Of a stretch of 64,000 nt of DNA, positions 3,706 through 38,316 are shown piece after piece (positions within the stretch are counted from its first letter, which is position 1; the number at the start of each line of letters is the position of its first letter). The DNA lies in sequence record PV654397.1; one strand, 5' to 3'. A model generated the notes under the pieces. It was not told the origin of the DNA. It did not search any database and saw only the letters and a list, made by a program, of their open reading frames with translations. A program made the position numbers and the translations under genes.

Positions 3706-3754
3706 ATATAATAGCAAAGGGACTGACCGGAGTCAATCCCTTTTTTAATCTTTT

Positions 3755-5749: not shown

Positions 5750-6073
5750 TTACATGTCTTTCTTACGTTTTACATCGTGGTAGCGAACTGTTATTTCTTT
5801 GTTGATCTCTTCCTCGATGCGGTGAATAACTTTTTCTTTCGGGTTGAAACCTATTACAGTTTCCTTAATGATTTCTAAACCCGTGTACTCGCCTTGTGTG
5901 CCGTAACCGTATGTAAAGGTTTCGTGTCCCAGGTCTTCCCAGCGATCACCAATCAATGCGGACACGTAGCAGGAGTGGTAAGTATTGCCGTGGCTATCAG
6001 TCCACCGATTAACTTTAATGTCAAAGGAGGTTACAATTTTCAGTTCTACTTTCTGGGTAAGGATCATAGCCAT
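5750..6073 (-). CDS. early protein, paralog of 12949-13272
   Basis: Shared RWTDS.GNTYHSC, FTYGY and VKRKKD segments. Confidence 0.8.
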   Translation of the reverse strand: MAMILTQKVELKIVTSFDIKVNRWTDSHGNTYHSCYVSALIGDRWEDLGHETFTYGYGTQGEYTGLEIIKETVIGFNPKEKVIHRIEEEINKEITVRYHDVKRKKDM

Positions 6074-6160
6074 TTTTATTTCTCTCTCTTTGTTAGGAGG
6101 GGAACCATTCCCCTCGCTTGATGTAAACTATTATACAGTACTAAGATACTTTGTCAATAC

Positions 6161-6343
6161 TTATTTTTTGGAAAGTTTACGCATTAATTCTACGCTTTCT
6201 TGTGAACGTTTTGCTACTTGACAAGCTGCATGGGCAGTAAACATTTTTGTATAGTCTGACGCTTTGCCACCGAACCGAGCGGCACGTTCACGGGCACTTG
6301 GAACTAATACGATTTCTTTCTTACAGATAGTGCACTTAGCCAT
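6161..6343 (-). CDS. small basic protein with CxxC...HxxC (possible Zn ribbon)
   Basis: Start trimmed to MAKCTICKK; ends AHAAC. Confidence 0.7.
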   Translation of the reverse strand: MAKCTICKKEIVLVPSARERAARFGGKASDYTKMFTAHAACQVAKRSQESVELMRKLSKK

Positions 6344-6431
6344 TTTAATTTCTCTCTCTTTGTTAGGAGGGGAACCGTTTCCCCTCACTTGATGTAAACT
6401 ATTATACAGTACTAAGATACTTTGTCAATAC

Positions 6432-6707
6432 TTAAGTATTGTAAATGTCGTGAATAGTGATAAAGTTTTTACGACCGTAAACATGTAAATCAGTATCAAT
6501 GTAGTGCTTATCAAGTACATCCTCGACGCTTAAAGACGTGTCGTGAATATCTTCATAAAATTGTGGATCAACAATCGTGCTTAAGTCATCTGGCGTTAAC
6601 TTATCGTTAAGACATTGAACCGCCTGGATATCTGCTTCACGTTTCCATTGTTCCAGATTAGTAGTCAGTACTTGCTCGATTTCGTTAGCTGTAAGTAAAG
6701 TCCGCAT
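6432..6707 (-). CDS. acidic hypothetical early protein (91 aa)
   Basis: ORF with AAGGA SD and own promoter. Confidence 0.7.
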   Translation of the reverse strand: MRTLLTANEIEQVLTTNLEQWKREADIQAVQCLNDKLTPDDLSTIVDPQFYEDIHDTSLSVEDVLDKHYIDTDLHVYGRKNFITIHDIYNT

Positions 6708-6771
6708 TTTAATGTTTCCTTATCAGTGGTTGATGTAAGTATTATACTCGTTTAATTTCTATTGTCAAACT

Positions 6772-6856
6772 ATTTTATCAGGGGAGTTTTTCGTATGTCT
6801 TACTCCTGGACTACTTAACGGGGTTACTTATTTCGTTCCCCGTCCTGATGTAAAAC
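6772..6856 (-). ncRNA. two-hairpin RNA candidate with AAG-N4-ACGAAAA loop, copy A
   Basis: Behind TTGCAT/TATAAT promoter; no start codon; near-identical copy at 18262-18346. Confidence 0.55.
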
Positions 6857-6937
6857 ATTATACTTGATTCTAAGTACAATGCAAGTACTTTTTTAAAAAT
6901 AGTTTTCAGTACTTGATAGTACTAGCCACCAGCAAAC

Positions 6938-6985
6938 AATAGATACATTTATGCACCCTGTGGGCTGATTTGTTTCTATGCGTAT
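6938..6985 (-). ncRNA. CCC-N3-GGGUGC motif RNA candidate, copy 3
   Basis: GCCCACAGGGTGC...ATGTATCT behind a fused terminator/promoter (6986-7023). Confidence 0.45.
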
Positions 6986-7032
6986 ATAATAGCAAAGGGA
7001 CTGACCGGAGTCAATCCCTTTTTCAAATATTT

Positions 7033-7182
7033 TTAAACTTCTTTCGGGTTGCGATATGTGATAGCGTTCGGGTACATTTGTTTAATGTTATTCCATGCCT
7101 GGTTAACATTATAACCACTTGATCGAATCAGTTGGTTATTACCGACACCTTGAAACACTACTTCAAATAAGAATTCTTTCAT
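7033..7182 (-). CDS. small hypothetical protein (49 aa, MKEFLFEV...; not in ORF track)
   Basis: ATGA overlap with upstream gene and GAGGTG SD; ends just before a terminator. Confidence 0.65.
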   Translation of the reverse strand: MKEFLFEVVFQGVGNNQLIRSSGYNVNQAWNNIKQMYPNAITYRNPKEV

Positions 7183-7352
7183 GCTTTCACCTCTCGATCT
7201 GCTTTGCCTTTACGCCAGGCTGTTGCTAATTGTTCGCGTTGCCATAAGTCGAGTGATACGTAAAGTTTTGCATTATCACCCTTCGGATATTCGCCAGTAG
7301 TACCAATCCGATAAAACAGATCTTTCAGTACTGTTAATTCTACCTGGACCAT
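7179..7352 (-). CDS. small hypothetical protein (MVQVELTV...)
   Basis: Start trimmed from 7454; GAGGA SD and leader hairpin. Confidence 0.7.
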   Translation of the reverse strand: MVQVELTVLKDLFYRIGTTGEYPKGDNAKLYVSLDLWQREQLATAWRKGKADREVKA

Positions 7353-7438
7353 TATACTTTCCTCTTTGTTCGGAGGGGAACTATTCCCCTTCCGATATAA
7401 AACATTATACACTTTATTCAGTACTGTGCAAGTACTTT

Positions 7439-7651
7439 TTAATCTTTCAGCCAATGATCCTGAATGAATTTTTCACCGGAACCTTGCTGCATTGATTGTA
7501 ACAGACGTTCGCGATGAGCGGCGGCGAATTGCTCAGTACTATGCGTTACACCTGGTTGATATCTGGATTCACCATTTGGGGCGATGTATTGTACATCCCA
7601 CGGTTTTTCGTTAGTATCAGACCATTTACGAACGATTAGTTGACCTTGCAT
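7439..7651 (-). CDS. hypothetical early protein (70 aa)
   Basis: GAGGA SD, promoter and leader hairpin. Confidence 0.75.
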   Translation of the reverse strand: MQGQLIVRKWSDTNEKPWDVQYIAPNGESRYQPGVTHSTEQFAAAHRERLLQSMQQGSGEKFIQDHWLKD

Positions 7652-7724
7652 TTTTCTTTCCTCTTAGTGGGGAGAATCATTTCTCCCCTTCATGTAAACT
7701 ATTATACAGTACTGGATTGCATTG

Positions 7725-8021
7725 TCAATATTTTATTACTTCTTCGTATAATTTATCTAGTACTTCGTATATTTCATTTAATGCACTTGATTTAAAAGCT
7801 GATAAGCTATACCCTTCATCTTTTAAAAATTTAATAAATTCAGTTGATGACGTGAATCCGATCGTTTCATGTGGGAATGAAAAATCAAACGTTCCTTGCA
7901 TTACGCATTTAAATTCATCAGGTGAAAACGTGTTACCTTTTTCCCGTCGCATAGTGAAAAATGTAACACCTGGAATAAACTTAAGCTGTTCCCGTGATTC
8001 AACTTCAATAACTGTTTTCAT
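7725..8021 (-). CDS. hypothetical early protein (98 aa)
   Basis: GAGGT SD, promoter and leader hairpin. Confidence 0.75.
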   Translation of the reverse strand: MKTVIEVESREQLKFIPGVTFFTMRREKGNTFSPDEFKCVMQGTFDFSFPHETIGFTSSTEFIKFLKDEGYSLSAFKSSALNEIYEVLDKLYEEVIKY

Positions 8022-8104
8022 ATATTACCTCTTAGTGGGGAGAATCATTTCTCCCCTTCATGTAAACTATTATACAGTACTATAATCTATTGTCAAATAC
8101 TTTT

Positions 8105-8293
8105 TTACAGTTTATGAATTAATTCTTTATCTAAGCGATAGCGTACATTATTAATGGTAACAGCATTATTTTTAATGCTACGCTGTACGGGTCCACCAGC
8201 AATAACAAACGTTGCTTTATTGCCCCGAACAATGATAGCACTTCCAGGATTACCGAAATCATCTTGTACTAAAATACTTGATAAGTTTTCCAT
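8105..8293 (-). CDS. hypothetical early protein (62 aa)
   Basis: GAGGA SD, promoter and leader hairpin. Confidence 0.7.
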   Translation of the reverse strand: MENLSSILVQDDFGNPGSAIIVRGNKATFVIAGGPVQRSIKNNAVTINNVRYRLDKELIHKL

Positions 8294-8373
8294 TTTTTTA
8301 TTTCCTCTTAGTAGGGGAAGATGTTTCCCCTTGATGCAAGTACTATAACAGTACTGAAAACTAAATGCAAGTA

Positions 8374-8730
8374 CTATGATAAAATCATGATAGGATATTC
8401 ACTATCTATCAATACCTCGAATCCGAAACCTTCGTACCATTCTTTAAGATTAAAGGCGTTATCTTCTCCCGTATCGCATTCTAAGATGATACAATCTGAA
8501 TCATCTGCGGCATCAATAAAGGCATTCATTAATTCGTTACCTTCACCATTGCCCCGACTATCAGGATCAACATAAAGAGAATCAATAAACGCTACACGGT
8601 CATAATCAAGATCCGGTGCAATGATTCCACGTTTAACAAACCAGTACTGCAATTGTGCTACTTTGCCCTGTACCTGATAACCAGTGATCTCGCCATTGTC
8701 AGTAGTACGCGTGATATGTTGTATTCCCAT
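8374..8730 (-). CDS. GNAT-family N-acetyltransferase
   Basis: Motif A IDSLYVDPDSRGNGEGNELM and motif B WYEGFGF. Confidence 0.85.
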   Translation of the reverse strand: MGIQHITRTTDNGEITGYQVQGKVAQLQYWFVKRGIIAPDLDYDRVAFIDSLYVDPDSRGNGEGNELMNAFIDAADDSDCIILECDTGEDNAFNLKEWYEGFGFEVLIDSEYPIMILS

Positions 8731-8793
8731 GATTACTATCCTCAGTTAAGATATAAAACATTATACACTATCTTTCAGTACTGTCAATACTTT

Positions 8794-9051
8794 TTATCTC
8801 ATAGATCTATGCCAACAATTACGCGGATCTCTTTTAAAAGTACTATCATGATCCTCCTGGCAAGTAATACAATACATGCACCCTATAACGGCCTGGCGTC
8901 GATTCTCAGGGATTTTATCGCCGCAGTCGAGGCAATGTACTAGTGATTCTCTTTGTGCGTTAATTTGCTTTCTAGCGTGGTTAACGGCTGCCTGAATCAC
9001 TGCATGAATCTCGTCTTGTTCGGCCCCGTCTTTCGCGTATCCTACTGCCAT
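8794..9051 (-). CDS. DksA/TraR-family C4 zinc-finger protein (YbiI-like)
   Basis: CLDCGDKIPENRRQAVIGCMYCITCQ matches CxxC-x17-CxxC with IPxxR; N-terminal MAVGYAKDGAEQDEI resembles the TraR/YbiI acidic tip. Confidence 0.85.
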   Translation of the reverse strand: MAVGYAKDGAEQDEIHAVIQAAVNHARKQINAQRESLVHCLDCGDKIPENRRQAVIGCMYCITCQEDHDSTFKRDPRNCWHRSMR

Positions 9052-9294
9052 TATTTTAACCTCATTATAAAAATACTATAGTACTGTAATGCTACAATAA
9101 TACTACTAGTGCTAATCTTATTCAAACCACATGATACTACATATCCCCCAGCATTACCACGGATAGTAACGCCTTCGTATTGTCTATATAAATTCAACTG
9201 CGTTTATTGCCTTTGATCAAGAATTGATCAGAATTATACGCCTTATGCTAAATTGATCCAGTACTTTTTTTGATCATTTATTGATCGATATTAT

Positions 9295-9348
9295 ATAGTT
9301 ACATTTGTGCACCCTATGGGTTAGTGACGTTCTCGTCTTGATGTAAGT
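9295..9348 (-). ncRNA. CCC-N3-GGGUGC motif RNA candidate, copy 4
   Basis: GACG-AGAA-CGTC hairpin then ACCCATAGGGTGC behind TTGACA-17-CATAAT (9349-9377); no ORF. Confidence 0.5.
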
Positions 9349-9381
9349 ATTATGCCAGTACTGGAGGATATTGTCAATAGA

Positions 9382-9579
9382 TTATTTTAATTTTTTTCTG
9401 TCATTGATTAATGCTTTCAGTACTATACTAATAACTTGCAATGATTCATCAATGACAATGAAATTATTCTCTTTCATTAGATGATAGTTACCATTGATTG
9501 TATATTCTAACGAGTACTGTTTACGTTTAATTTTTGATAATGTTTCTATTTGTTTTTGTACTGATTTCATGCTAATCAT
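9382..9579 (-). CDS. hypothetical protein
   Basis: ORF; AGGA SD 9 nt before ATG at 9579; start uncertain. Confidence 0.45.
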   Translation of the reverse strand: MISMKSVQKQIETLSKIKRKQYSLEYTINGNYHLMKENNFIVIDESLQVISIVLKALINDRKKLK

Positions 9580-9684
9580 TGTCAAACGTCCTGTAACGCA
9601 TTCTAACGAGATAAACGGTTTAGTACTGGCATTGTATAGGGTAAATGATTAAAGCCCACCAGCGTTAACCAGTGGGCTATAATA

Positions 9685-9828
9685 TTACATCTTGCGGATA
9701 ATCTTAACAGTATCTTTCACCGATTTACCGTTTTGCTGACATTGCTCGATCATCGCGTATTGTTCTGCGGTCAGATCCTCGCCAGTTTTTGCCAGTACTG
9801 CGTCGATGAATGAATCCAGTGCGATCAT
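9685..9828 (-). CDS. small protein (47 aa, MIALDSFI...; not in ORF track), paralog of 13888-14040
   Basis: GAGAG SD and own promoter; shared LD.F...V...E...I..C...GK....T..II.K pattern. Confidence 0.7.
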   Translation of the reverse strand: MIALDSFIDAVLAKTGEDLTAEQYAMIEQCQQNGKSVKDTVKIIRKM

Positions 9829-9918
9829 TTTGTTTCTCTCTTAGGTTAAGTTAACTACTGTTTATAAAACTTATTATACAGTACTATCAAACGTTGTCAA
9901 TAGTACTGGTAATATATT

Positions 9919-10098
9919 TTAGCGGTAGTCGTCGTATGCTTTATTCACCTGGCGAATATAACTTTCAAAGGCTTCGTCTACCGTTTCATACTCCCGAACA
10001 TAATCACCATATGAAACTACATACATACCTTTTTGATCTTCAAACGTCATGATGATAGAATCCAGACCAACGATTTCAGTTTTTGCGATGATAGCCAT
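9919..10098 (-). CDS. small hypothetical protein (59 aa, MAIIAKTE...; not in ORF track)
   Basis: AAGGA SD and own TTGACA promoter. Confidence 0.7.
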   Translation of the reverse strand: MAIIAKTEIVGLDSIIMTFEDQKGMYVVSYGDYVREYETVDEAFESYIRQVNKAYDDYR

Positions 10099-10180
10099 TT
10101 TTAATTCCTTAATAGTGTAGTTGATAAAAGTTATTATGTCAGTACTATCAAACTATGTCAATAGTACTGTGATAATATTT

Positions 10181-10393
10181 TTAGTTAATGATAGTCAGTG
10201 TAAAATTGTAATCACCTGCCTGGTATAGTACTTTGTCGCCGAACGTTCCAACACGTTTCATATTGCAATAGATACCCATAACACTTTTTACATCTTTGAT
10301 ATTCCGAACGCCAGTAATATCCTTGTTTAAATGATCGTGATCAGAAAATAAAACTTGTTTTGCATTTTTCAGTACAGTGCAGATATTAGCCAT
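10181..10393 (-). CDS. hypothetical early protein (70 aa)
   Basis: SD, promoter and leader hairpin. Confidence 0.7.
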   Translation of the reverse strand: MANICTVLKNAKQVLFSDHDHLNKDITGVRNIKDVKSVMGIYCNMKRVGTFGDKVLYQAGDYNFTLTIIN

Positions 10394-10488
10394 TTTGTTT
10401 TCTCTCTGTTAGTGGGGAGAATCATTTTCTCCCCTTGATGTAACTTATTATACAGTACTATAATCTATTGTCAAACTATTTTTTTATA

Positions 10489-10830
10489 TTATTCGAAATC
10501 TTCTGGACCGGACTGATAATCATCTTCACCGTATGCACTTTCTAACCGCTCGCCAGTGTGATCATCAGTTAGTGAGTCATCCTCATAGTTCACGTCTACG
10601 CCAGTGATGTAAAACTGGCTATCGTCTGGATCATTGAAATTAATTTTTTGGATGTTTACAATAACTGTATTGATACCCAGGACACCGCCATCAGCCGTTA
10701 CAAAGTACTGATAGTTTTCGCAACCGCCTGAATTGAAACCGTAATTAATTTCGGCCCGACCATCATTTAAACGCAGTGCCTGAGCGATGATTTCATTTTC
10801 AAAGTTAGATTGAGCAATTGAGATAGTCAT
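10489..10830 (-). CDS. acidic hypothetical early protein (113 aa)
   Basis: AAGGA SD, promoter and hairpin; D/E-rich C-terminus. Confidence 0.75.
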   Translation of the reverse strand: MTISIAQSNFENEIIAQALRLNDGRAEINYGFNSGGCENYQYFVTADGGVLGINTVIVNIQKINFNDPDDSQFYITGVDVNYEDDSLTDDHTGERLESAYGEDDYQSGPEDFE

Positions 10831-10949
10831 GATTCGTTTCCTTATTACCAGGGGAAACCGTTTCCCCTTTCGATGTAAAACATTATACGCTTATTGAGAT
10901 AGTTTGCAAGTACTTTTTAAAAATAGTTTTCAGTACTCAAACATTATAT

Positions 10950-11000
10950 AATAGATACACTTATGCACCCTGTGGGCTAGTGAGCTATCTCTCAATGAAT
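10950..11000 (-). ncRNA. CCC-N3-GGGUGC motif RNA candidate, copy 5
   Basis: TGAG-AGATAG-CTCA hairpin then GCCCACAGGGTGC...GTGTATCT behind a fused terminator/promoter (11003-11042). Confidence 0.5.
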
Positions 11001-11040
11001 ATATAATAGCAAAATGGCTGACCGGAGTCAACCACTTTTT

Positions 11041-11184
11041 TCATTTATTTTTAGCTTTTAGAATCGCCGCCTTTCGCGTCATGCCTTGCTTGATGTATTC
11101 CTGTACTTTCGCTTTACGTGCATTCGCTTTATTTGCTTTCGTAAACGCCGAACAACTTTTATAGTTTAAACCTGTTGGATTCAT
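11041..11184 (-). CDS. small basic protein (47 aa, MNPTGLNY...; not in ORF track)
   Basis: GGTG SD; Lys/Ala-rich; ends at a terminator. Confidence 0.55.
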   Translation of the reverse strand: MNPTGLNYKSCSAFTKANKANARKAKVQEYIKQGMTRKAAILKAKNK

Positions 11185-11270
11185 TTAAATCACCATAAAG
11201 AATAGATAGGTTACTAACAACGCCGCGATCAATGCACCGACCAGGGCCGAACTATAGTAAGCTAATGTTT

Positions 11271-11423
11271 TCATTTTTTAGCCTGAAAGTAATGTTTAAT
11301 TTGTGCGGCGGTCAGTGCACAATTACGCAGGAAGTTTTCTGTATAACTTTTGCGAGTACTGAAAGAGAATTGACCTTTGCCGTTGCCGATAGTAACATCA
11401 AACCGAGCGTTGTATTGTTTCAT
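11271..11423 (-). CDS. small hypothetical protein (MKQYNARF...)
   Basis: Start trimmed; AGGAG SD and leader hairpin. Confidence 0.55.
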   Translation of the reverse strand: MKQYNARFDVTIGNGKGQFSFSTRKSYTENFLRNCALTAAQIKHYFQAKK

Positions 11424-11509
11424 TTTGTTTCTCCTGTTATTGGGGAGAATCATTTCTCCCCTCTATGTAAAACATTATACGCGTTTAAAAACTAATTGCA
11501 AGTATTATT

Positions 11510-11761
11510 TTAAACGTTGTATTTTAAACTTTGTGCGACTAATTTCGCACGGTCAATCATATTCTGCCATTTTTGGATCTCTTCTGGTAGAAAACGATAT
11601 TCACCAATTACAATAGTGATACACTGGTCAGCCTTGTCGATGTATGTGGTATCAATCTCTACTTGAACGGGTACACGTTCGCCGTACTCAGTCCCTGGGA
11701 TAATGCAATCATTATCATAAGTTACAGTAGTAGCAGTGTCTTTGATTAAAATTGTTTCCAT
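11510..11761 (-). CDS. hypothetical early protein (83 aa)
   Basis: GAGGA SD, promoter and hairpin. Confidence 0.75.
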   Translation of the reverse strand: METILIKDTATTVTYDNDCIIPGTEYGERVPVQVEIDTTYIDKADQCITIVIGEYRFLPEEIQKWQNMIDRAKLVAQSLKYNV

Positions 11762-11843
11762 TATACTTTCCTCGTTAGGTGTAAGGGGAACGTTTTCCCC
11801 TTCATGTAAACTATTATACAGTACTAAAAACTAATTGCAAGTA

Positions 11844-11990
11844 CTATTTTTTAGATTTACGCAAACTTTCTACCATCTCAGGAGTAAGGCCCGGCGGGTA
11901 GGAAACTACTTCATCAACGAAACGTAAAGGGAATACCCCAGCGAAAGGTGAACGTGCTTTCTTAGTATTACTCTTTTTTGATGCTTTCAT
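11844..11990 (-). CDS. small basic protein (48 aa, MKASKKSN...; not in ORF track)
   Basis: AAGGA SD, promoter and hairpin. Confidence 0.6.
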   Translation of the reverse strand: MKASKKSNTKKARSPFAGVFPLRFVDEVVSYPPGLTPEMVESLRKSKK

Positions 11991-12059
11991 TTCATATTCC
12001 TTAATTAGTGGGGAGAATCATTTCTCCCCTTCATGTAAAACATTATACGCGTTTAAAAA

Positions 12060-12269
12060 CTAATTGCAAGTACTATTTGAAAGTAAATGCTCATACGCTA
12101 CATTAACTACGTTTTCAATAACCGACTGTACAGAAAGATCCCCCACGTCCTGGCTATAGTAGAAATCGCTTACAGTGGTGTCATCGTATGCAAATACTTT
12201 ACCAGGTACTGCATCAATCACATACATATTAACCTTTAAGATGTCGATCTTATCCTGTACAGTAAGCAT
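12060..12269 (-). CDS. hypothetical early protein (69 aa)
   Basis: ORF directly downstream of 12275-12547. Confidence 0.65.
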   Translation of the reverse strand: MLTVQDKIDILKVNMYVIDAVPGKVFAYDDTTVSDFYYSQDVGDLSVQSVIENVVNVAYEHLLSNSTCN

Positions 12270-12274
12270 ATTAA

Positions 12275-12547
12275 TTAACCTTTTAAGTACTGGCTTAAGT
12301 AGTCTTGTTGATCTTCGGTGATTGCAGCCATCTTCCCTAGTACTGGATTAATGATATAATCCCCTGTAACGTCCTGTAACGCATTCTCAGGCGGTTTAAC
12401 GGCTGGGGTAGCCATAGCCATTGCCTGGACTTGTTCGACGCTGTAACGCTCATAAAGGCGGCATTCTTCCGGTGTTAACATAGCATCAATGCGTTTCATC
12501 GGTTTAATGATGCTTTCGATCTCATTCAGTACTTGATTAACGTTCAT
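12275..12547 (-). CDS. hypothetical early protein (90 aa)
   Basis: GGGGA SD. Confidence 0.7.
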   Translation of the reverse strand: MNVNQVLNEIESIIKPMKRIDAMLTPEECRLYERYSVEQVQAMAMATPAVKPPENALQDVTGDYIINPVLGKMAAITEDQQDYLSQYLKG

Positions 12548-12598
12548 GGTATAATCCCCAATATAAGCGGCCTAAATCGACCGCTAACGATGTTTTGA

Positions 12599-12868
12599 TT
12601 AATAGGTGTATGGTTGACGTTCAAACAATGATTGCACGTTGTACGCCCCACTAATGGGCTTTGCTGGCAAATCGATTTTATATTGTTCACGCTTAAAGAT
12701 AATAAAACGGCAATTGTTTTTAACATCAAAATTGATTGAACGTTCCAGGAGTTTACCATCGTGCACAAATACAAGATAACCGCTCGCTACTTGTTTTGTA
12801 GTACTGGTTGCAACCATAGACCGACGAACATGAGTACCTGCATCGATTAAAGTACTGATATTTTTCAT
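12599..12868 (-). CDS. hypothetical early protein (89 aa)
   Basis: GAGGA SD. Confidence 0.7.
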   Translation of the reverse strand: MKNISTLIDAGTHVRRSMVATSTTKQVASGYLVFVHDGKLLERSINFDVKNNCRFIIFKREQYKIDLPAKPISGAYNVQSLFERQPYTY

Positions 12869-12948
12869 TATACGATCCTCTTAAGTTAATTTAATTTCTT
12901 TCCCCTATGCAGACACTATATCAAAGTATCTGCATAAAGTAAAGCTAA

Positions 12949-13272
12949 TTAAAGATCTTTTTTGCGTTTAACATTCTGTACAGTACAATGCAACGGGATA
13001 TTAAGATCATTGCACAAACGAGTAAGGGAGGTTTCATCAGTATTAAGCCCGTCTACTGATTCCTTTAAGAGAGATAACGCCGTTTGTTGATATGCATCTT
13101 CATAGCCATAAGTAAATGATTCAACCGCCAGATCATTCAAACCGTTATCCAGTTCGACGCTTACATGACAAGAATGATAAGTATTGCCATATGAATCAGT
13201 CCAACGTTTACCGTCAACATTGATTGCACGGATTGCAGCCAGGGAAACGGTGTTAATGATAGTTTTAGCCAT
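12949..13272 (-). CDS. early protein, paralog of 5750-6073
   Basis: RWTDSYGNTYHSC...FTYGY...VKRKKDL. Confidence 0.8.
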   Translation of the reverse strand: MAKTIINTVSLAAIRAINVDGKRWTDSYGNTYHSCHVSVELDNGLNDLAVESFTYGYEDAYQQTALSLLKESVDGLNTDETSLTRLCNDLNIPLHCTVQNVKRKKDL

Positions 13273-13361
13273 TTTTGTATTCCTTAAATTAATATGTTGT
13301 CTTGATAAAATCTATTATGCCAGTACTATCAAACTATGTCAATAGTACTGTGATAATATTT

Positions 13362-13505
13362 TTACTTACTTTTTTCTTTCTTTATTGCTTCCACCTGGTC
13401 GGCCCATTCTTTACCCCATACTTGTAAATTATAATGGTACTGGCAAAGAGCAACTCCCCGCTTTAAACCCGTAATAGATTTCTGACCACATTGACAAGTT
13501 TTCAT
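13362..13505 (-). CDS. small Cys/His protein (47 aa, MKTCQCGQ...LCQYH; not in ORF track)
   Basis: AAGGA SD, leader hairpin; CxC...CxxH possible Zn ligands. Confidence 0.65.
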   Translation of the reverse strand: MKTCQCGQKSITGLKRGVALCQYHYNLQVWGKEWADQVEAIKKEKSK

Positions 13506-13590
13506 TTTAGTTTCCTTGTAGTGGGGAGAACCATTTCTCCCCTTGATGTAATGTATTATACTTTATTCGATTTACTTTGCAAGTACTTTT

Positions 13591-13818
13591 TTAATTTAAT
13601 TCATCCAGGCAAAGGATACGCTCAACGCCCAAATCAGTTAAACTAATCGACGGCACTTGATAGGTTTCAATGTATGCTACACTTGCCCACTGACCGAACT
13701 CATTAACGGCCCAGGTATTCATTGCATTTTGCAATTCCGCACCTTCCTTGTTGGTAATGACTGCAACTACTTGTTCGTTGCCAGTAGTACCAGATACGCG
13801 AGTAATGATAATAGCCAT
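13591..13818 (-). CDS. hypothetical early protein (75 aa)
   Basis: AGGA SD and own promoter. Confidence 0.7.
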   Translation of the reverse strand: MAIIITRVSGTTGNEQVVAVITNKEGAELQNAMNTWAVNEFGQWASVAYIETYQVPSISLTDLGVERILCLDELN

Positions 13819-13887
13819 TTTTTAATTCCTATTCAGTAGTTGATGTATGTATTATGCCAGTACTTAAAACTATTGTCAAACTATTTT

Positions 13888-14040
13888 TTAAAGTTTATCA
13901 ATGATTGATGCCGTTTCATTGATAGTCTTGCCGTGTTTTGCACACGCGATAACTGCTTTAAATTCCTTTGATGACCAATCTTTCTTACTGCATACTGACA
14001 TTACTTGTAAAGTAAAACAATCCAGGTCATAAGTATTCAT
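13888..14040 (-). CDS. small protein (50 aa, MNTYDLDC...; not in ORF track), paralog of 9685-9828
   Basis: GAGGA SD; shared residue pattern with 9685-9828. Confidence 0.65.
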   Translation of the reverse strand: MNTYDLDCFTLQVMSVCSKKDWSSKEFKAVIACAKHGKTINETASIIDKL

Positions 14041-14315
14041 CTTTATATCCTCAGTTAGTTAAGGTGTCTTGCCTTGATGTAATTAATTATACGCTAATCT
14101 CTTAATCGTGCAAGTACTTTTTATTACTTTTTGCAAAATACTTTAAACGCTCTCAATCGCATTACAACGACCTTAACGCCACCAGCTAGGGCAATGCATC
14201 AGATAATCAGTTTAATGCGTTAGAATCGTTTCTAGGCGGTGCTGGTGGCCTGGTAAACGATAAACACAAAAAAGCCCACCGTTTAAGGTGGGCTAGTGAT
14301 TCAGTACTTTAATTG

Positions 14316-14798
14316 TTATGCTTCAACTTTGCGATGAGCTTCGATCCATTCCTCGCGAGTCATACCACTGGAGTTAATCGCGTCCAGTACTACCGCAATG
14401 CAGTTACCACGCACCGGAATCAGATATTCTTCCCCGTTGTCCAGTACTACCGCTACGCGTTCCTGAATCCATTTTTTGGCTTTTACTTCTGGCTTGTCTT
14501 CCCCATACTTAACCGCCAGGGCTTTTTGTGCCATCTCTGTAACTACTTCCAGATCCAATCCAACTACTGCCGCCTGGATACTTTCAATTGTTGCTTGTAG
14601 TTCTGCTTCACGGGCCGCCTTTGCCGCTTCAATTTCTGCCGCTTTATTTGCTTGTAGTTCTTTCGCAGTACTGTACGCGATGTTAAAATTATTGCGTACC
14701 GCTTTCATGGTATCGTTATCCAGTTCAGCCAGGATCTCAGCCGCGACGTTAGTTTCATTTGCTACCAGTGCTTTGATGAATGATTTTACATTAGCCAT
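14316..14798 (-). CDS. H-NS-like protein (coiled-coil N-terminus, H-NS-type C-terminal domain with altered DNA-binding loop)
   Basis: LDNGEEYLIPVRGNCIAVVLDAINSSGMTREEWI aligns without gaps to E. coli H-NS [34 protein letters not shown]; Ala/Glu-rich coiled coil ending GLDLE. Confidence 0.55.
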   Translation of the reverse strand: MANVKSFIKALVANETNVAAEILAELDNDTMKAVRNNFNIAYSTAKELQANKAAEIEAAKAAREAELQATIESIQAAVVGLDLEVVTEMAQKALAVKYGEDKPEVKAKKWIQERVAVVLDNGEEYLIPVRGNCIAVVLDAINSSGMTREEWIEAHRKVEA

Positions 14799-14859
14799 TT
14801 TATAAATCCTCAATTAAAGTTTAGTTTACGTTTATTAGTGTATCAAAGTTTTCTCGACG

Positions 14860-14915
14860 TGTCCAGTTTTTCGTTCGACTTACTGGCGGTCTACTTAGTG
14901 CTCCCCGTCTTGATG
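14860..14915 (-). ncRNA. diverged copy C of the AAG-N4-ACGAAAA hairpin RNA, in the leader of the H-NS-like gene
   Basis: ACGGGGA...AAGTAG...CCAGT-AAGTCGAACGAAAA-ACTGG. Confidence 0.45.
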
Positions 14916-15031
14916 TAATACATTCTACGCTTTTCTGTGGTAATGTCAACTACTTTCTTAAAACTATTTTCAAAGTATCTCAGTACTACGATACTACAAA
15001 AACAAAAAAGCCCACCAGGTGGGCTATGTAC

Positions 15032-15262
15032 TTAATCAGTGAGTAAAATATTAAACACTTTACCATTTAACGTTATTGGTGCACTGCTACCAGGCTCAAG
15101 ATCCGTTAATATACCTGCAATCGCTTTATCATTGGCGACCTTTCCAGTGTCCAACAGTACTACAGTACTGATAAGATTAACGCTCGTTTCAATATCATAA
15201 TGCACGGCGTTAAGTAGTTGTGTAGTACTGCTTTCGTTAAGTAAAACAATTCGCTTAGTCAT
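15032..15262 (-). CDS. hypothetical early protein (76 aa)
   Basis: GGGGT SD. Confidence 0.65.
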   Translation of the reverse strand: MTKRIVLLNESSTTQLLNAVHYDIETSVNLISTVVLLDTGKVANDKAIAGILTDLEPGSSAPITLNGKVFNILLTD

Positions 15263-15283
15263 GATGTTACCCCGTAGTATCTA

Positions 15284-15583
15284 TCAACGGCAATTAATAA
15301 CGCCGGTATGCGTTACTTTCTCAGTATCCATTACAGTGACCGAACCGCGTTTAGTACTGGCATCATAATAAATTGTTGTGCTACCGTTTTCGTCTTCTTC
15401 ATGGAACGGGCCGTTTTTAAATGCTTCCGGCTGGATCTCTAAATCCTTTAATACAATCTCGCCAGTTCTTTCATCGGTCATTGCAACAGTGCACTGAATG
15501 AATTTTTCACTACTTACATCTAATGACGCATTAACAGCGAAAGAGGAAACAGATAAAGCCAGGGCGATGATTGCAATTTTCAT
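15284..15583 (-). CDS. secreted/periplasmic protein with signal peptide and terminal Cys pair
   Basis: MKIAIIALALSVSSFAVNA signal peptide; Cys near both ends of the mature chain. Confidence 0.7.
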   Translation of the reverse strand: MKIAIIALALSVSSFAVNASLDVSSEKFIQCTVAMTDERTGEIVLKDLEIQPEAFKNGPFHEEDENGSTTIYYDASTKRGSVTVMDTEKVTHTGVINCR

Positions 15584-15667
15584 TTGATTATCCTTAGTTA
15601 CCAGGGGGAACCGCTCCCCCTTGCGATGTAAAATATTATACAGTACTAAAAACTATTATCAAGTACT

Positions 15668-15904
15668 TTATGATTTTTTATAAAACATTTCAGCCGTGAT
15701 ATTTTTACCCGTTGGTTGTACTTTATCCAGAATTTTTTGATGCCCAGGCCGTCCAAATGAATATGATCCGTAAACCGTAAACCAGTAGTTACCCTCAGTG
15801 TTTACATGTACAGCACAATAGGGTACACCCCGCGATTCATCACTAGTAAAGTGTACTACCGTTCCCGTTACATTCGCAGACGTTGATTTGATTTGTTCAA
15901 GCAT
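15668..15904 (-). CDS. hypothetical early protein (78 aa)
   Basis: AAGGA SD, promoter and hairpin. Confidence 0.7.
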   Translation of the reverse strand: MLEQIKSTSANVTGTVVHFTSDESRGVPYCAVHVNTEGNYWFTVYGSYSFGRPGHQKILDKVQPTGKNITAEMFYKKS

Positions 15905-16013
15905 TTTCTTATTCCTTAGTTACCAGGGGAACCGCTCCCCCTATGCAAAACATTATACGCGTTTAAAAACTAATTGCAAGTATTTTAATAAAAAGTATTT
16001 GAAAAAATAGTTG

Positions 16014-16042
16014 TTGACAAGTGCATCCAGTACTGGCATAAT
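16014..16042 (+). promoter_or_regulatory. plus-strand sigma70 promoter antisense to the early genes
   Basis: TTGACA-17-CATAAT with AGTACT 9 bp after the -35. Confidence 0.75.
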
Positions 16043-16047
16043 TACTA

Positions 16048-16145
16048 CATCAAGACGAAACAGTCACTAACCCACCGGGTGCCGAGATCCGTCTATTAAA
16101 TGATTCAGTACTGAAAAAGTAACGGGGAGTTATTATCTCCCCGCG
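16048..16145 (+). ncRNA. CCC-N3-GGGUGC motif RNA candidate, copy 6
   Basis: GAC-GAAACA-GTC hairpin, ACCCACCGGGTGC, ends at hairpin CGGGGAG-TTATTAT-CTCCCCG; no ORF. Confidence 0.55.
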
Positions 16146-16148
16146 TTG

Positions 16149-16370
16149 TTATTTTGTAAGGTATAAACAGAAGTCACCTTTATTTGCTACGCCGCCAGTG
16201 TAACGCGAGGAATAGTTAGAAACGTCCTGGACTTCTGCTATTACCAGGGTATCATCATTCAATTCGTCGCAGAAGCAAACGGCTGGATCTTGTACGCCGA
16301 TTTTGTCAGCATGTTCCCGCATAGATTTAACCAGTGCTTCCAGTTGGGAAAGAGTAGTGATATTAGCCAT
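16149..16370 (-). CDS. hypothetical early protein (MANITTLS...)
   Basis: Start trimmed; GAGGA SD and hairpin. Confidence 0.7.
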   Translation of the reverse strand: MANITTLSQLEALVKSMREHADKIGVQDPAVCFCDELNDDTLVIAEVQDVSNYSSRYTGGVANKGDFCLYLTK

Positions 16371-16454
16371 TGTATTTTCCTCATTACCAGGGAGAACCAT
16401 TTCTCCCTTTGATGTAAACCATTATACAGTACTGAAAACTAATTGCAAGTACTT

Positions 16455-16643
16455 TTAATTAAATTCCATAAAATCATTTTCAACGTGCACAACAATCTGA
16501 TTATTTTTAAAGGACGCAGAAAACTCTATACAATCATAAACCGCTTTTTCTGTTACCAGACTATGAGCACCAATCGGATTAATTGGGGATTGAATTGTTT
16601 CAATCTCGTTACCTTGTTCATTAACGATTAAAATATTAAACAT
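16455..16643 (-). CDS. hypothetical early protein (62 aa)
   Basis: AGGAG SD; promoter leader duplicated at 16870-16910. Confidence 0.7.
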   Translation of the reverse strand: MFNILIVNEQGNEIETIQSPINPIGAHSLVTEKAVYDCIEFSASFKNNQIVVHVENDFMEFN

Positions 16644-16682
16644 TGCCGTTACTCCTGGATAGTGTTAACTCGATATAAAGTA

Positions 16683-16865
16683 TTATACGCCTTTATTGCT
16701 TAGTGTCCAGTGATCACGCATCATACGCCCCGCACGATCCCAGCTAGTAGGCATGGGTATGCCTTGCAATTCGTTAGGGGAGATCTCGACCTCGATCCCT
16801 ACATCAATAACAGTCATTCCAGCTTTCGCAGCTTGCTCGCGGATAACCTCAGATAATGTTGTCAT
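16683..16865 (-). CDS. hypothetical early protein (60 aa)
   Basis: AGGAG SD and own promoter. Confidence 0.65.
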   Translation of the reverse strand: MTTLSEVIREQAAKAGMTVIDVGIEVEISPNELQGIPMPTSWDRAGRMMRDHWTLSNKGV

Positions 16866-16939
16866 GATTAAAGCTCCTGGATAGTGTTAACTCGATATAA
16901 AGTATTATACAGTACTGAAAACTAATTGCAAGTACTTTT

Positions 16940-17200
16940 TCAATATTGTTTGTCGTCGTCTTCCTCGATGAATTGACCGACGAAATGATCTACTTTCGCT
17001 TTGAGGCTTTTATAATCTTCTTCTACTTCCTTTAAACGTTCCTGGTAGTATTCCAGTGCTTGAATATACGCCGCCTCAGCAGTTTTTGCACGCATAGCTA
17101 AATTCATTCCACGCGTTTCATCAAATAGCCAATAACCATCGGTGCAATGACTGATAGATAATGATTTACTTAGTGCTGTATAGCTAATTACTTTACTCAT
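16940..17200 (-). CDS. hypothetical phage protein with C-terminal coiled coil (86 aa)
   Basis: GAGGG SD; YWLFDETRGMNLAMRAKT motif typical of phage early proteins (recollection, not searched). Confidence 0.75.
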   Translation of the reverse strand: MSKVISYTALSKSLSISHCTDGYWLFDETRGMNLAMRAKTAEAAYIQALEYYQERLKEVEEDYKSLKAKVDHFVGQFIEEDDDKQY

Positions 17201-17257
17201 TAGATAACCCTCAGTAAAGGCGGGAACTATTACCCGCCATTATCTCAGTACTGAATA

Positions 17258-17497
17258 TTACATTCCAACCATTGCAGCACGGATCGCAGTAGTGCTATAC
17301 TTAAAGCCGTCCGGCGTTGTAGTAGTACCGTTGGCTTTTAATCTGCGGTACATACATTCCGCAGCAATATCTTTAGTTCTACTTTGTGCGATGCAACTTT
17401 GAGCAAGCCGATACAATGACTCACCGTTATTAATCCAAAGGCTTACATTCCAATGAGTTTTGTTTTTGTGACCGTTGTAAGTTTTAGTACTAGCCAT
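17258..17497 (-). CDS. early protein, paralog of 19300-19539
   Basis: Shared GHKNKTHWNVSLWINN and TPDGFKYSTTAIRAAMVGM. Confidence 0.8.
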   Translation of the reverse strand: MASTKTYNGHKNKTHWNVSLWINNGESLYRLAQSCIAQSRTKDIAAECMYRRLKANGTTTTPDGFKYSTTAIRAAMVGM

Positions 17498-17587
17498 TTT
17501 TAAATCCTCGTTTGAGCGGGGAACCACTCCCCGCCTCGATATAAAGTATTATACGCTTTTAAACTTAGTTTGCAAGTACTTTTTAAA

Positions 17588-18199
17588 TTAATATTCGATT
17601 GATTCCACTACGCCATCAATAACATTGAATTGATACTCGTTACCCTCAATCAGTGCCGTAATGTTTTCAGTAGTGAATTGATCCTCATATGCATTCTCTA
17701 AATCACGGTACAACTTGCGGGACAATTCACGAATAGTTTCAGTGAGTAGTTCCTCAAGCTCATTAACTAACGTTTCTTGTTTTGCGGTTAAATCAGTGTA
17801 AGCCGATTCAATGTACCCGCTTACCGTGTTTTCGTGTGCGTAGCGAGAGTGTGAACGTTCTACACTCATTGCCAAATCATCTTCATTCAACAAGTGACGG
17901 ATAGAACGATATTTCGTTAACGCTTTAATCTTGCGTAAAAACTTCACTGCGTCCACGCTGTCAGTACTGATTGATGCACCGTCACCCTGGGACCAAAAAC
18001 CGCTGAATTGTATTTCAGCTTCATTAATGCCATATTCCGGTAGTACTGTTTCTTTATAGTATTCAATTTCACTTTCAGAAAAATAATTGTCGTTTGAGTT
18101 TTTTTCACGTTCCCGAACCAGTTCGATAGCTGACGTTTGTTGTTCTGCGTTCAATTCAGAAAAAGCCATAACATAAGTAGTAGTAGTGATAGTTTTCAT
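17588..18199 (-). CDS. FSGFWSQGDG-motif protein (family seen on plasmids and phages, often auto-annotated as an antitoxin)
   Basis: TTTYVMAFSELNAEQQ N-terminus and IQFSGFWSQGDGAS core; family assignment from memory. Confidence 0.6.
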   Translation of the reverse strand: MKTITTTTYVMAFSELNAEQQTSAIELVREREKNSNDNYFSESEIEYYKETVLPEYGINEAEIQFSGFWSQGDGASISTDSVDAVKFLRKIKALTKYRSIRHLLNEDDLAMSVERSHSRYAHENTVSGYIESAYTDLTAKQETLVNELEELLTETIRELSRKLYRDLENAYEDQFTTENITALIEGNEYQFNVIDGVVESIEY

Positions 18200-18261
18200 T
18201 TTGTAACCCTCATTCAGTAGTTGATGTAAGTATTATACGCTTTTAAAAACATTTGTCAAAC

Positions 18262-18346
18262 TATTTTATCAGGGGAGTTTTTCGTGTGCCTTACTCCTGG
18301 GCTACTTAACGGGAAGTTACTTATTTCGTTCCCCGTCCTGATGTAA
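18262..18346 (-). ncRNA. two-hairpin RNA candidate with AAG-N4-ACGAAAA loop, copy B
   Basis: Near-identical to 6772-6856, with differences in the N4 loop segment and one stem. Confidence 0.55.
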
Positions 18347-27820: not shown

Positions 27821-27828
27821 ATTAATAT

Positions 27829-27887
27829 GCCAGTACTTGATACTGGCTTTTTTGATTAAATATAGTATAATGAATAAAGGAGGAAAT
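27829..27887 (+). repeat. conserved intergenic cassette (GCCAGTAC hairpin terminator, ATTAAATATAGTATAAT, AAAGGAGG RBS); further copies from 29004, 31441, 32654, 33917, 34727, 35936 and 40647, variant at 30254, terminator only at 43015
   Basis: Near-identical ~65-bp sequence read before eight MLPF genes. Confidence 0.85.
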
Positions 27888-28997: not shown

Positions 28998-29068
28998 TAC
29001 TATGCCAGTACTTGATGCTGGCATTTCTTTTTGTATTAAATATAGTATAATGTATAAAGGAGGAAAAT

Positions 29069-30250: not shown

Positions 30251-30324
30251 ATGATACCAGTACTGAAATACGTACTGGTATTTTTTTGTAAATACATTAT
30301 AATTATTATATGGAGATTTTAGTT

Positions 30325-31434: not shown

Positions 31435-31504
31435 CATAATGCCAGTACTTGAGTACTGGCATTCTTTTTGATTAAATATAGTATAATGAATAAAGGAGGG
31501 AATT

Positions 31505-37176: not shown

Positions 37177-37185
37177 GAGGAAAAT

Positions 37186-38304: not shown

Positions 38305-38316
38305 GAGAGAATAATT

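Follow-up and report, generated by a model that had tools for sequence, protein, structure and literature searches.

A conserved RNA with a predicted pseudoknot in the early leaders of enterobacterial phages

The window considered here is a 64,000-nucleotide stretch of sequence record PV654397.1, from an Asteriusvirus jumbo coliphage that is 99.7% identical to phage WPEC5. Three related, ORF-less units lie on its minus strand, at 6849-6777 (unit 1), 18342-18268 (unit 2) and 14914-14842 (unit 3). None of the three holds an ATG, and every minus-strand frame of units 1 and 2, and two of three in unit 3, has a stop. The stretches at 6772-6856 and 18262-18346, which contain units 1 and 2, share 79 identical bases over about 85. 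A preliminary description had noted these two near-identical units and a diverged third copy at 14863-14886, and that observation is correct: all three copies are present where it placed them.

Consensus sigma-70 promoters flank each unit. The upstream promoter (P1) of unit 1 is TTGCAT (6884-6879), a 16-nt spacer and TATAAT (6862-6857), with an inferred start near A6851/C6850. This promoter was read by eye; its -35 matches only 3 of 6 consensus bases, so the promoter scan does not list it. P1 of unit 2 is TTGCAA-16-TATAAT at 18377-18350. P1 of unit 3 is TTGACA-16-TAGAAT at 14949-14922 (11 of 12 consensus bases), directly following a strong minus-strand terminator at 15025-15009 plus a T-run. 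Downstream, units 1 and 2 are each followed by a second promoter (P2), a perfect TTGACA-16-TATAAT (12 of 12). P2 of unit 1, at 6768-6741, drives a 91-aa gene at 6707-6432 (PHROG 14947, unknown function), and P2 of unit 2, at 18259-18232, drives a 203-aa gene at 18199-17588 (PHROG 5162, unknown function). Unit 3 has only a weak P2-like site, TTGATA-17-TAAACT at 14846-14818 (9 of 12), ahead of a 160-aa gene at 14798-14316 that ends at a terminator at 14294-14273. The preliminary description called this gene H-NS-like. However, it has no H-NS match in Pfam, only PHROG 27871 of unknown function.

The elements themselves are built from the same parts. Unit 1 reads, 5' to 3', P0a AUCAGG (6849-6844), hairpin H1 (6843-6818, ACGGGG/CCCCGU), linker UAAGUA (6817-6812), S1a GUC (6811-6809), L1 CA (6808-6807), S2a GGAGU (6806-6802), L2 AA (6801-6800), S1b GAC (6799-6797), L3 AUACGAAAA (6796-6788), S2b ACUCC (6787-6783) and P0b CCUGAU (6782-6777). 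Its minimum-energy fold gives P0, H1 and S2 at -21 kcal/mol (z -3.2), whereas S1 comes from covariation. Unit 2 reads P0a AUCAGG (18342-18337), H1 (18336-18309, ACGGGGA/UUCCCGU, with one G·U pair), UAAGUA (18308-18303), S1a GCC (18302-18300), L1 CA (18299-18298), S2a GGAGU (18297-18293), L2 AA (18292-18291), S1b GGC (18290-18288), L3 ACACGAAAA (18287-18279), S2b ACUCC (18278-18274) and P0b CCUGAU (18273-18268), with a fold of -19.3 kcal/mol (z -2.05). Unit 3 has no H1 hairpin. Here an outer P0, AUCAAG (14914-14909), pairs with CUUUGAU (14848-14842) and an inner P0, GACG (14909-14906), pairs with CGUC (14859-14856). These enclose UAAGUA (14897-14892), S1a GAC (14891-14889), L1 CG (14888-14887), S2a CCAGU (14886-14882), L2 AA (14881-14880), S1b GUC (14879-14877), L3 GAACGAAAA (14876-14868) and S2b ACUGG (14867-14863). 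The minimum-energy fold of unit 3 gives GACG/CGUC plus S2.

Is the resemblance between the three more than chance? The pattern AAGNNNNACGAAAAAC occurs exactly 3 times in the window against 0.56 expected, but on its own this is weak, as 2 of 100 shuffles reach 3. Much stronger evidence comes from a covariance model built only from T7-type phage sequences, with no window sequence in it. This model recovers exactly the three copies and nothing else in the 64 kb up to E=10. Unit 3 is the best hit (14921-14849, 25.9 bits, E 2.7e-5), followed by unit 1 (6839-6771, E 4.1e-4) and unit 2 (18332-18262, E 8.3e-4). The match is therefore far beyond chance.

The element is not private to this phage. Units that are 88-93% identical occur between tandem promoters in Justusliebigvirus and Vequintavirinae phages (the rV5/phi92-like group). 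The same core is in T7 itself at 536-595, in the A1 transcript just before promoter A2 (the record annotates A1 at 498 and A2 at 626), and in about 490 Autographiviridae records. It is also found in the Rak2-like phages RaK2, K64-1, Munch and Hallingskeid, and in LIMEzero and LTH01. The T7-only model finds 1-3 copies per whole phage genome. In contrast, there is no match in Rfam 15, no bacterial copies were found, and the element is absent from Pseudomonas phage gh-1.

The preliminary description interpreted each copy as a hairpin with an invariant 14-nt loop, AAG-N4-ACGAAAA, whose four central bases form a variable specificity element in a protein-binding RNA module. These four bases are ACAU in unit 1, GCAC in unit 2 and UCGA in unit 3. 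This interpretation is only partly supported. The element is indeed discrete, ORF-less and promoter-proximal, with strongly constrained unpaired bases and a stem that covaries, which is the signature of a functional structured RNA that binds a macromolecule or ligand. Protein binding is plausible, although it remains an inference. However, a simple hairpin is not supported. The 5' part of the supposed loop (G-N-C) pairs with the G-N-C that ends and follows the UAAGUAG linker. Together with a closing helix that encloses the core, this gives an H-type pseudoknot. Nor are the four variable bases free. Position 1 covaries with the linker base (U paired with A in unit 1, C with G in unit 2), position 2 is always C, position 3 is a purine and only position 4 varies freely. 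In other words, the variation is structural covariation and a variable 4-nt specificity element is not supported.

The structural evidence comes from several sets of sequences. In 26 distinct T7-type sequences, 92.6% of cells are paired and 10 of 15 pairs have changes on both sides. The covariation score is 0.413 against 0.135 for shuffles, none of 500 of which reach it, and slid controls give only 16-35% paired. Five of the 6 pairs of the helix between the loop and the 3' strand are compensated. Across 43 distinct sequences of all types, S2 is 100% paired with 3 of 4 pairs compensated. The middle pair of S1, between the base after UAAGUAG and the first variable loop base, forms in 42 of the 43 (AU 30, UA 8, CG 4, other 1) between invariant G-C and C-G pairs, and RaK2 has GCU/AGC. 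In an independent metagenome set, 27 of 27 stem-bearing sequences pair at that position, including a new G-C, whereas only 6 of 20 chance matches without a stem do so. Minimum-energy folds recover the closing helix in all ten jumbo, rV5-type and LIMEzero-type copies, and the closing helix together with S2 in 8.

Could the element instead act as DNA, for example as an UP element or factor site for P2, or be a remnant of promoter-cassette recombination with no RNA role? The A-tract of ACGAAAAAC lies where an UP subsite of T7 A2 would be, and P1 and half of H1 derive from the generic promoter cassette of this phage. However, the distance from the element to the next -35 varies from about 2 nt to over 40 nt. 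Furthermore, three helices keep complementarity through compensatory changes, which has no meaning in duplex DNA, and G·U pairs outnumber A·C 12 to 1 in the helices, which points to RNA on the sense strand. A DNA-level role is therefore already disfavoured, and is the least likely of the explanations considered.

What the analysis establishes is that the three units are members of one conserved, pseudoknotted RNA family, encoded at the 5' end of immediate-early transcripts made by host sigma-70 RNA polymerase. Confidence that this is a real structured RNA family shared with T7 is about 0.9. The core is UAAGUA, S1a (G-N-C), 2 nt, S2a (4-6 nt), (A)UAA, S1b (G-N'-C), R-N-ACGAAAA and S2b, enclosed by a helix that pairs the sequence just 3' of S2b with sequence upstream of the linker. 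In units 1 and 2 that helix is AUCAGG/CCUGAU and the phage's generic 5' hairpin, H1, is inserted. In T7-type phages the upstream strand lies in the loop of H1, making a second pseudoknot whose 3' strand is often the -35 hexamer of promoter A2. Everything beyond this, including any binding partner and any function, is inferred.

One clue to function is position. The element always follows the first sigma-70 early promoter, starting within about 5 nt of the inferred start in the jumbo and rV5 types, and usually precedes a second one. It usually follows a terminator and often lies in the terminal repeat. Perhaps the element folds as it is transcribed and presents its invariant unpaired bases (UAAGUA, UAA, ACGAA) to a host component conserved across Enterobacterales. 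The most likely partner would be the transcribing RNA polymerase or its elongation and termination factors. In this scenario, polymerases that start at the first promoter (P1, or A1 in T7) would become resistant to pausing, Rho or terminators, in the manner of HK022 put RNA, which needs no phage protein. This would fit the only moment when no phage protein yet exists. T7-type leaders also carry an rrn-type boxA. This put-like, cis-acting mechanism is the best guess, but a tentative one (about 0.35), and some observations do not fit. Polymerases starting at P2 (A2 and A3 in T7) transcribe the same genes without the element. Unit 3 heads a single gene bracketed by strong terminators (15025-15009 and 14294-14273), so read-through is not obviously needed there. 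The window has no boxA, and decades of in vitro work on T7 A1 transcription are not known to have reported an antitermination effect of this segment. The very high conservation of unpaired bases would equally fit a trans-acting decoy or a ligand pocket.

The decoy is the nearest rival, although it is still considered unlikely. In this view the leader RNA, made in large amounts from the strongest early promoter, would act free or after processing to sequester a host RNA-binding protein, such as a defence nuclease or toxin, or a protein of RNA decay such as RNase E or Hfq. An ORF-less unit with its own promoter, followed by a second promoter that serves the gene, does look like a separate gene. 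It is exchanged as a cassette between unrelated phage genera, and it is restricted to phages of Enterobacterales. In addition, the T7 leader is released by RNase III at R0.3. However, no terminator or defined 3' end follows the element, no partner is known, and a discrete small RNA could be neither shown nor excluded from public data that comprised only assembled contigs.

A 5' stabilizer or processing signal is more doubtful. A compact 5'-terminal pseudoknot might block 5'-end-dependent RNase E entry or scanning, or direct a cut, lengthening the life of P1 transcripts. The element does start within a few nucleotides of the inferred 5' end, every other early cassette of this phage carries a plain 5' hairpin at the same place, and H1 of units 1 and 2 is that generic hairpin. 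Nevertheless, a plain hairpin would be enough for this job. It does not explain about 17 invariant unpaired bases kept across phage families, or the two-layer pseudoknot.

Less likely still is a riboswitch-like aptamer that senses a host metabolite or ion at the onset of infection. A compact H-type pseudoknot with an A-rich third loop and invariant junction bases has the size and complexity of small aptamers. However, no expression platform is visible, with no terminator and no Shine-Dalgarno sequestration conserved across types. A second promoter also lies between the element and the gene, and no Rfam riboswitch matches, even at E up to 10.

Among the closest known systems is the HK022 put RNA (putL, putR), a cis-acting antiterminator that binds RNA polymerase and needs no protein factor (PMC9378689). 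It too is coliphage-encoded, about 70 nt, directly downstream of an early sigma-70 promoter (PL) and highly structured, with tertiary contacts, and it works, as this element could, before any phage protein exists. However, there is no sequence or structure homology. The T7-only model finds nothing in the whole HK022 genome, and put is two long stems with a triplex rather than an H-type pseudoknot with a closing helix. Lambda-type nut sites and the rrn boxB-boxA-boxC leader are likewise promoter-proximal leader RNA signals that modify elongation, and the rrn-type boxA of the T7-type leaders lies further downstream of the element. However, the element itself has no boxA, its "loop" is part of a pseudoknot and not a GNRA-like boxB pentaloop, and no N-like protein is implied.

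The pistol self-cleaving ribozyme (RF02679) is also phage-associated, and has a hairpin whose loop forms a pseudoknot, followed by an A-rich linker. The linker UUAAGUAG resembles the UUAAAUAG linker of a pistol ribozyme, which raises the possibility of a new self-cleaving ribozyme. This is very unlikely, because Rfam's pistol and all other ribozyme models give no match at E up to 10, the strand order differs from pistol, there is no evidence of cleavage, and full-length T7 A1 leader RNAs are classic in vitro and in vivo products. The last comparison is with the promoter-plus-stem-loop early cassettes of large lytic phages, such as PeSL of T4-type phages and the RpoD-like promoters with UP elements in the Rak2-like phage CBB (PMC5259590). 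P1 and the H1 hairpin of units 1 and 2 belong to the window's own 26-copy early promoter/5'-hairpin cassette family, and the unit travels with its promoter between phage genera. However, those cassettes are plain promoter-hairpin modules in front of genes, and only 3 of about 45 early promoters in the window carry this pseudoknot core.

The DNA in which the three copies of the element occur is the left 64 kb of an Asteriusvirus (Rak2-like) jumbo coliphage that is 99.7% identical to Escherichia phage WPEC5, with the same coordinates. Relatives annotate this region as part of the direct terminal repeat. Positions 1-21,000 form an early region that holds dozens of short minus-strand genes and about 45 strong sigma-70 promoters, 12 of which are perfect TTGACA-16/17-TATAAT. 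A 26-copy cassette recurs on the minus strand of this region. It consists of an A/T-rich upstream stretch, TTGCAA or TTGACA, TATAAT, a 5' hairpin formed by the initial transcribed ACAUCGAGAGGGGGAAC...GUUCCCCC (also GGGGGAAC..GUUCCCCC), a Shine-Dalgarno sequence and ATG. The initial transcribed AUCGAGAGGG is the same as the start of the T7 A1 transcript, which suggests shared or exchanged promoter-leader modules.

Other repeats are found in the window. A hairpin CAAAGGGACTGACCGGAGTCAATCCCTTTTT (plus strand) occurs four times, at 1455-1495, 3715-3755, 6993-7033 and 11010-11050, and a related AAAAAGGGCCGACCGAAGTCAACCCTTTT occurs nine times, with related copies at 48243-63607. On the minus strand each is a terminator-like stem directly followed by a -10-like GCTATTATAT or GCTATAAT. 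This is probably what the preliminary description counted as its first ncRNA family, and it looks like a terminator-promoter composite. On the plus strand at 26672-44000 there are about 15 tandem paralogous genes of about 380 aa, spaced about 1.2 kb apart. All of them start MLPFVRMFDYGN, they carry RCC1 repeats (Pfam PF00415, PF13540, PF25390) and each is followed by a GCCAGTACT..AGTACTGGC terminator. Finally, dense families of 84-224-nt direct repeats (D1, D4, D5) at 48698-51850 suggest a block of small paralogous genes.

The observation itself has been confirmed, because all three copies put forward in the preliminary description (units 1, 2 and 3) are present at the stated places on the minus strand. 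Units 1 and 2 share 79 identical bases over about 85. No small ORF was found, since none of the three units holds an ATG and stops interrupt all but one of their nine minus-strand frames. An AUG-AAG-UAA minigene can be seen in T7 A2, but it is not conserved in T3. The loop pattern alone is only weakly above chance, with three occurrences found against 0.56 expected, and 2 of 100 shuffles reach three. The decisive test was a covariance model (R1) built from 26 T7-type sequences, none of them from this phage group. R1 finds exactly these three sites in the 64 kb, with E values of 2.7e-5, 4.1e-4 and 8.3e-4, and nothing else up to E=10. The same model finds three copies in the whole 121Q genome, in the same order, and one each in T7, muut, A7_1 and Munch. 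So this is a low-copy, specific element and not the generic promoter cassette.

The element is not private to this phage. A BLAST search with unit 1 found units that are 88-93% identical in unrelated genera, namely in the Justusliebigvirus phages muut, outra and EmilieFrey and in the Vequintavirinae phages A7_1, A73, W70 and A5-4. In each case the unit lies between two consensus promoters, and in A7_1 and A73 it lies after a terminator. The downstream genes differ. However, the unit, the second promoter (P2) and the 91-aa gene at window positions 6432-6856 are shared as one block with muut (1501-1932). The protein is 95% identical and the unit about 88% identical, which points to recent horizontal exchange of an early cassette.

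A weak hit in T7-like phages then led to Klebsiella phage Pkp-1. This phage has GUUAAGUAGUCA-GCCUGU-AAGACAUACGAAAA-ACAGGC, which is the same linker and loop with a different stem. T7 itself has GGAUAAGUAGACAGCCUGAUAAGUCGCACGAAAAACAGGUAUUGACA at about 545-595. This lies inside the transcript from promoter A1 (annotated at 498 in NC_001604) and ends in the -35 box of A2 (annotated start 626). About 490 Autographiviridae records hold the element, including T3, Kayfunavirus, Klebsiella, Yersinia, Erwinia and Citrobacter phages and Cronobacter GAP227. So do the Rak2-like phages RaK2, K64-1, Muenster, Munch, 7t3, fENko-Kae01 and Hallingskeid, as well as Pantoea LIMEzero and the Vequintavirinae phage LTH01. 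One record labelled 'UNVERIFIED_ORG', that of phage CMSTMSU (640-690), has S2 (the stem of the originally described hairpin) shortened to GAG/CUC by small deletions. It is either a decayed copy or contains sequencing errors.

All carriers seen infect Enterobacterales. The element was not found by R1 in Pseudomonas phage gh-1 or SP6, but R1 also missed the diverged RaK2 copy, which was aligned by eye from a BLAST hit, and these negative results are therefore weak. For gh-1 the A1-A3 region was also read directly and no motif was seen, and a loop pattern is absent from the left end of SP6. A host copy or host mimicry was also considered. There was no blastn match in 5,426 complete E. coli genomes at E up to 1, although that search cannot see matches of about 15 nt. 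A strict pattern scan of one genome each of 185,579 prokaryote species gave only stemless chance hits plus one T7-like contig in a metagenome bin.

The structure of the T7 type was examined on 26 distinct sequences, in which three helices were tested. These were H1 (a short G+C hairpin), H2 (the originally described hairpin, whose stem is S2) and a helix between the H1 loop and the bases just 3' of H2. In total 92.6% of cells pair, against 77% in shuffles and 16-35% when partners are slid, and 10 of 15 pairs change on both sides. The covariation score is 0.413 against 0.135, and 0 of 500 shuffles reach it. The loop-to-3' helix takes at least six forms, GUCAA/UUGAC, GUCAUC/GAUGAC, GUCGGU/ACCGAC and GAUUAG/CUAAUC, plus GUCAC/GUGAC and GCUAA/UUAGC in metagenomes. 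In most T7-like phages its 3' strand is the -35 hexamer of A2. In T7 this strand (UUGAC, 590-595) belongs to the outer pseudoknot as well as to the promoter, so one sequence does two jobs. In contrast, the pairing strand is separate from the next promoter in Kayfunavirus, in Pkp-1 and in phages of the type of locus L012.

A model-fitted alignment of 43 distinct sequences of all types reveals a common core. The linker UAAGUA followed by G-N-C is present in all three window copies, and these columns are invariant in the 43 sequences except for one C at the first U. S2 is a stem of 4-6 bp that encloses UAA, S1b and R-N-ACGAA(A/C)A. It is 100% paired, and 3 of 4 pairs are compensated, with the forms CCUG/CAGG, CCAG/CUGG, CUUG/CAAG and GGAG/CUCC. 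In the window it is GGAGU/ACUCC in units 1 and 2 and CCAGU/ACUGG in unit 3. The base after UAAGUAG covaries with the first of the four loop bases that had been taken as variable (AU 30, UA 8, CG 4, one exception). That pair lies between an invariant G-C and an invariant C-G, and together they form a 3-bp helix, S1, between linker and 'loop'. S1 is GUC/GAC in unit 1, GCC/GGC in unit 2 and GAC/GUC in unit 3, so that units 1 and 2 differ at exactly these two positions (U-A against C-G). RaK2, which is not in the alignment, has GCU/AGC, and this compensates a second S1 position.

S1 was then tested on data not used to propose it, a metagenome scan with both positions left free. All 27 distinct stem-bearing sequences pair (AU 25, UA 1 and a new GC in a T3-like contig), whereas only 6 of 20 chance matches without a stem do. 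The core is therefore an H-type pseudoknot that runs from UAAGUA through S1a (G-N-C), L1 (2 nt), S2a, L2 ((A)UAA), S1b (G-N'-C) and L3 (R-N-ACGAAAA) to S2b. The preliminary description had proposed a hairpin with a fixed loop and a variable 4-nt specificity element, and its interpretation is only partly supported. The element is real but was under-read, in that it is a pseudoknot rather than a hairpin, it forms one family with the T7 A1 leader, and the 'variable box' is covariation rather than a specificity code.

In jumbo, rV5-type and LIMEzero-type copies the bases 3' of S2 also pair with bases upstream of the linker. This closing helix is AUCAGG/CCUGAU in units 1 and 2, GACG/CGUC plus AUCAAG/CUUUGAU in unit 3, GACGG/CCGUC in LTH01, GCGGC/GUCGC in the copy at locus L060, GGCGA/UCGCC in RaK2 and CCGAA/UUCGG in LIMEzero. 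Minimum-energy folding recovers it in all ten copies tried, and together with S2 in 8. The topology differs from the T7 type, where the 5' strand lies in the H1 loop. H1 of units 1 and 2 is the phage's generic 5' hairpin inserted in the junction, and unit 3, LTH01 and Hallingskeid lack it. Perhaps the element is a 5' stabiliser, but this is considered unlikely.

Could the element act as DNA? G·U pairs outnumber A·C 12 to 1 in the helices, the helices keep complementarity while changing sequence, and the distance to the next -35 varies from about 2 nt to over 40 nt. These points argue against a DNA protein site or an UP element of P2. The latter was rejected because of the widely varying spacing and the covarying helices, and a DNA-level element is the least likely of the alternatives.

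Judged by promoter consensus only, each window copy lies directly downstream of the first early sigma-70 promoter (P1) of a transcription unit. Units 1 and 3 also follow a terminator-like hairpin (7021-6994 and 15025-15009, respectively). Each copy precedes a second promoter, which is perfect for units 1 and 2 and weak for unit 3. The same order of P1, element and P2 holds in T7 (A1, element, A2), muut, A7_1, A73, LTH01, Munch, RaK2, Hallingskeid and LIMEzero. The downstream genes (91, 203 and 160 aa) belong to PHROGs of unknown function. The gene after unit 3 (14316-14798, minus strand) had been called H-NS-like, but this label is not supported by Pfam, in which it has no H-NS match. It belongs to PHROG 27871 and has an alanine- and glutamate-rich N-terminal stretch (residues about 50-85) that could form a helix. 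A riboswitch would couple an aptamer to an expression platform (a terminator or Shine-Dalgarno sequestration). No terminator follows the units, and the AGGAG inside S2 of units 1 and 2 is not conserved in other types. An aptamer is regarded as improbable.

One alternative is that the RNA is a trans-acting decoy for a host protein, which is possible but less likely than a role in cis. The RNA data consist of assembled (Logan) contigs of RNA-labelled runs, which cannot show transcript ends such as the defined 5' and 3' ends that a small-RNA gene with a discrete transcript would have. Over positions 6000-7500, the contigs of two such runs of one study cover the flanking genes and stop at 6719 and 6791. 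The stop at 6791 falls inside sequence shared by units 1 and 2 and is explained by assembly branching at a repeat. The contig breaks near unit 1 most probably reflect its repetition in the genome.

What the analysis establishes is that a conserved pseudoknotted RNA lies at the 5' end of the first host-transcribed phage RNAs. That it binds a host component common to Enterobacterales is an inference, as is any function. The best guess, to which a probability of only about 0.35 can be given, is that it acts in cis on the transcribing polymerase or its termination factors, as the put RNA of HK022 does (PMC9378689). Three things fit this idea, the position, the timing before any phage protein exists and the boxA in T7-type leaders. 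However, two observations do not fit. Polymerases initiated at P2, A2 and A3 lack the element, and unit 3 heads a single gene closed by a strong terminator at 14294-14273. Several other ideas were considered as possibilities only, namely CRISPR-repeat mimicry (RNA anti-CRISPR), similarity of the T7 loop to the 16S 3' region AAGUCGUAACAAGG, a sarcin-ricin or loop-E AGUA/GAA motif and a -10-like sigma pause element in UAAGUAG, which lacks the critical T.

The T7 A1 promoter and its transcript are among the most used objects in transcription research. Even so, this segment contains a pseudoknot with about 17 invariant unpaired bases that is conserved from T7 to 380-kb jumbo phages. Literature searches, which did not extend to subscription-only papers such as the original T7 sequence papers, found no description of it. 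If it acts on RNA polymerase, Rho or a defence protein, it would reveal how unrelated virulent phages secure their very first transcripts using RNA alone, and this is directly testable in T7, the most tractable phage. It would also give annotators a marker for immediate-early operons in jumbo phages whose early genes are all of unknown function.

How does the element compare with known systems? Rfam 15 gives no hit at gathering score in the whole window, and only noise at E up to 10 around unit 1 and in T7 480-930 (mir-12, Lnt, PutA thermometer, Ysr197). No Rfam family matches, including pistol, hammerhead, twister, hatchet and every other ribozyme and riboswitch model, and a ribozyme is considered very unlikely. 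In comparison with lambda or rrn nut-type sites, there is no boxA (GCUCUUUAACAA or CGCUCUUA) next to the hairpin. The window has one boxA-like site with one mismatch, at 63960, which is consistent with chance. T7-type early leaders do carry an rrn-type boxA (GCUCUUUAACAA), but 40-230 nt downstream, as seen in T7 (783-826) and at phage loci L006, L093, L034 and L103. In T7 it is preceded by the hairpin GGUC-UAACGAAACCU-GACC and then UAAGAC, which are the same words (ACGAAA, UAAG) as in the motif but in a different arrangement. The element is not homologous to HK022 put, an RNA that suppresses pausing and termination in cis by binding the RNAP beta' zinc-binding domain, because R1 finds nothing in the full HK022 genome at E up to 10. 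A more far-reaching but doubtful possibility is that the T7 A1 leader and the early leaders of jumbo and rV5-like coliphages share an undescribed class of double-pseudoknot RNA that, with no phage protein, would reprogram a core host machine in the first seconds of infection. That machine could be the RNA polymerase elongation complex, or Rho or another RNA-handling factor specific to Enterobacterales. In this view the element would be mobile between phage families as a promoter-plus-RNA cassette, and it would be a second class of RNA-only host takeover element, structurally unrelated to put.
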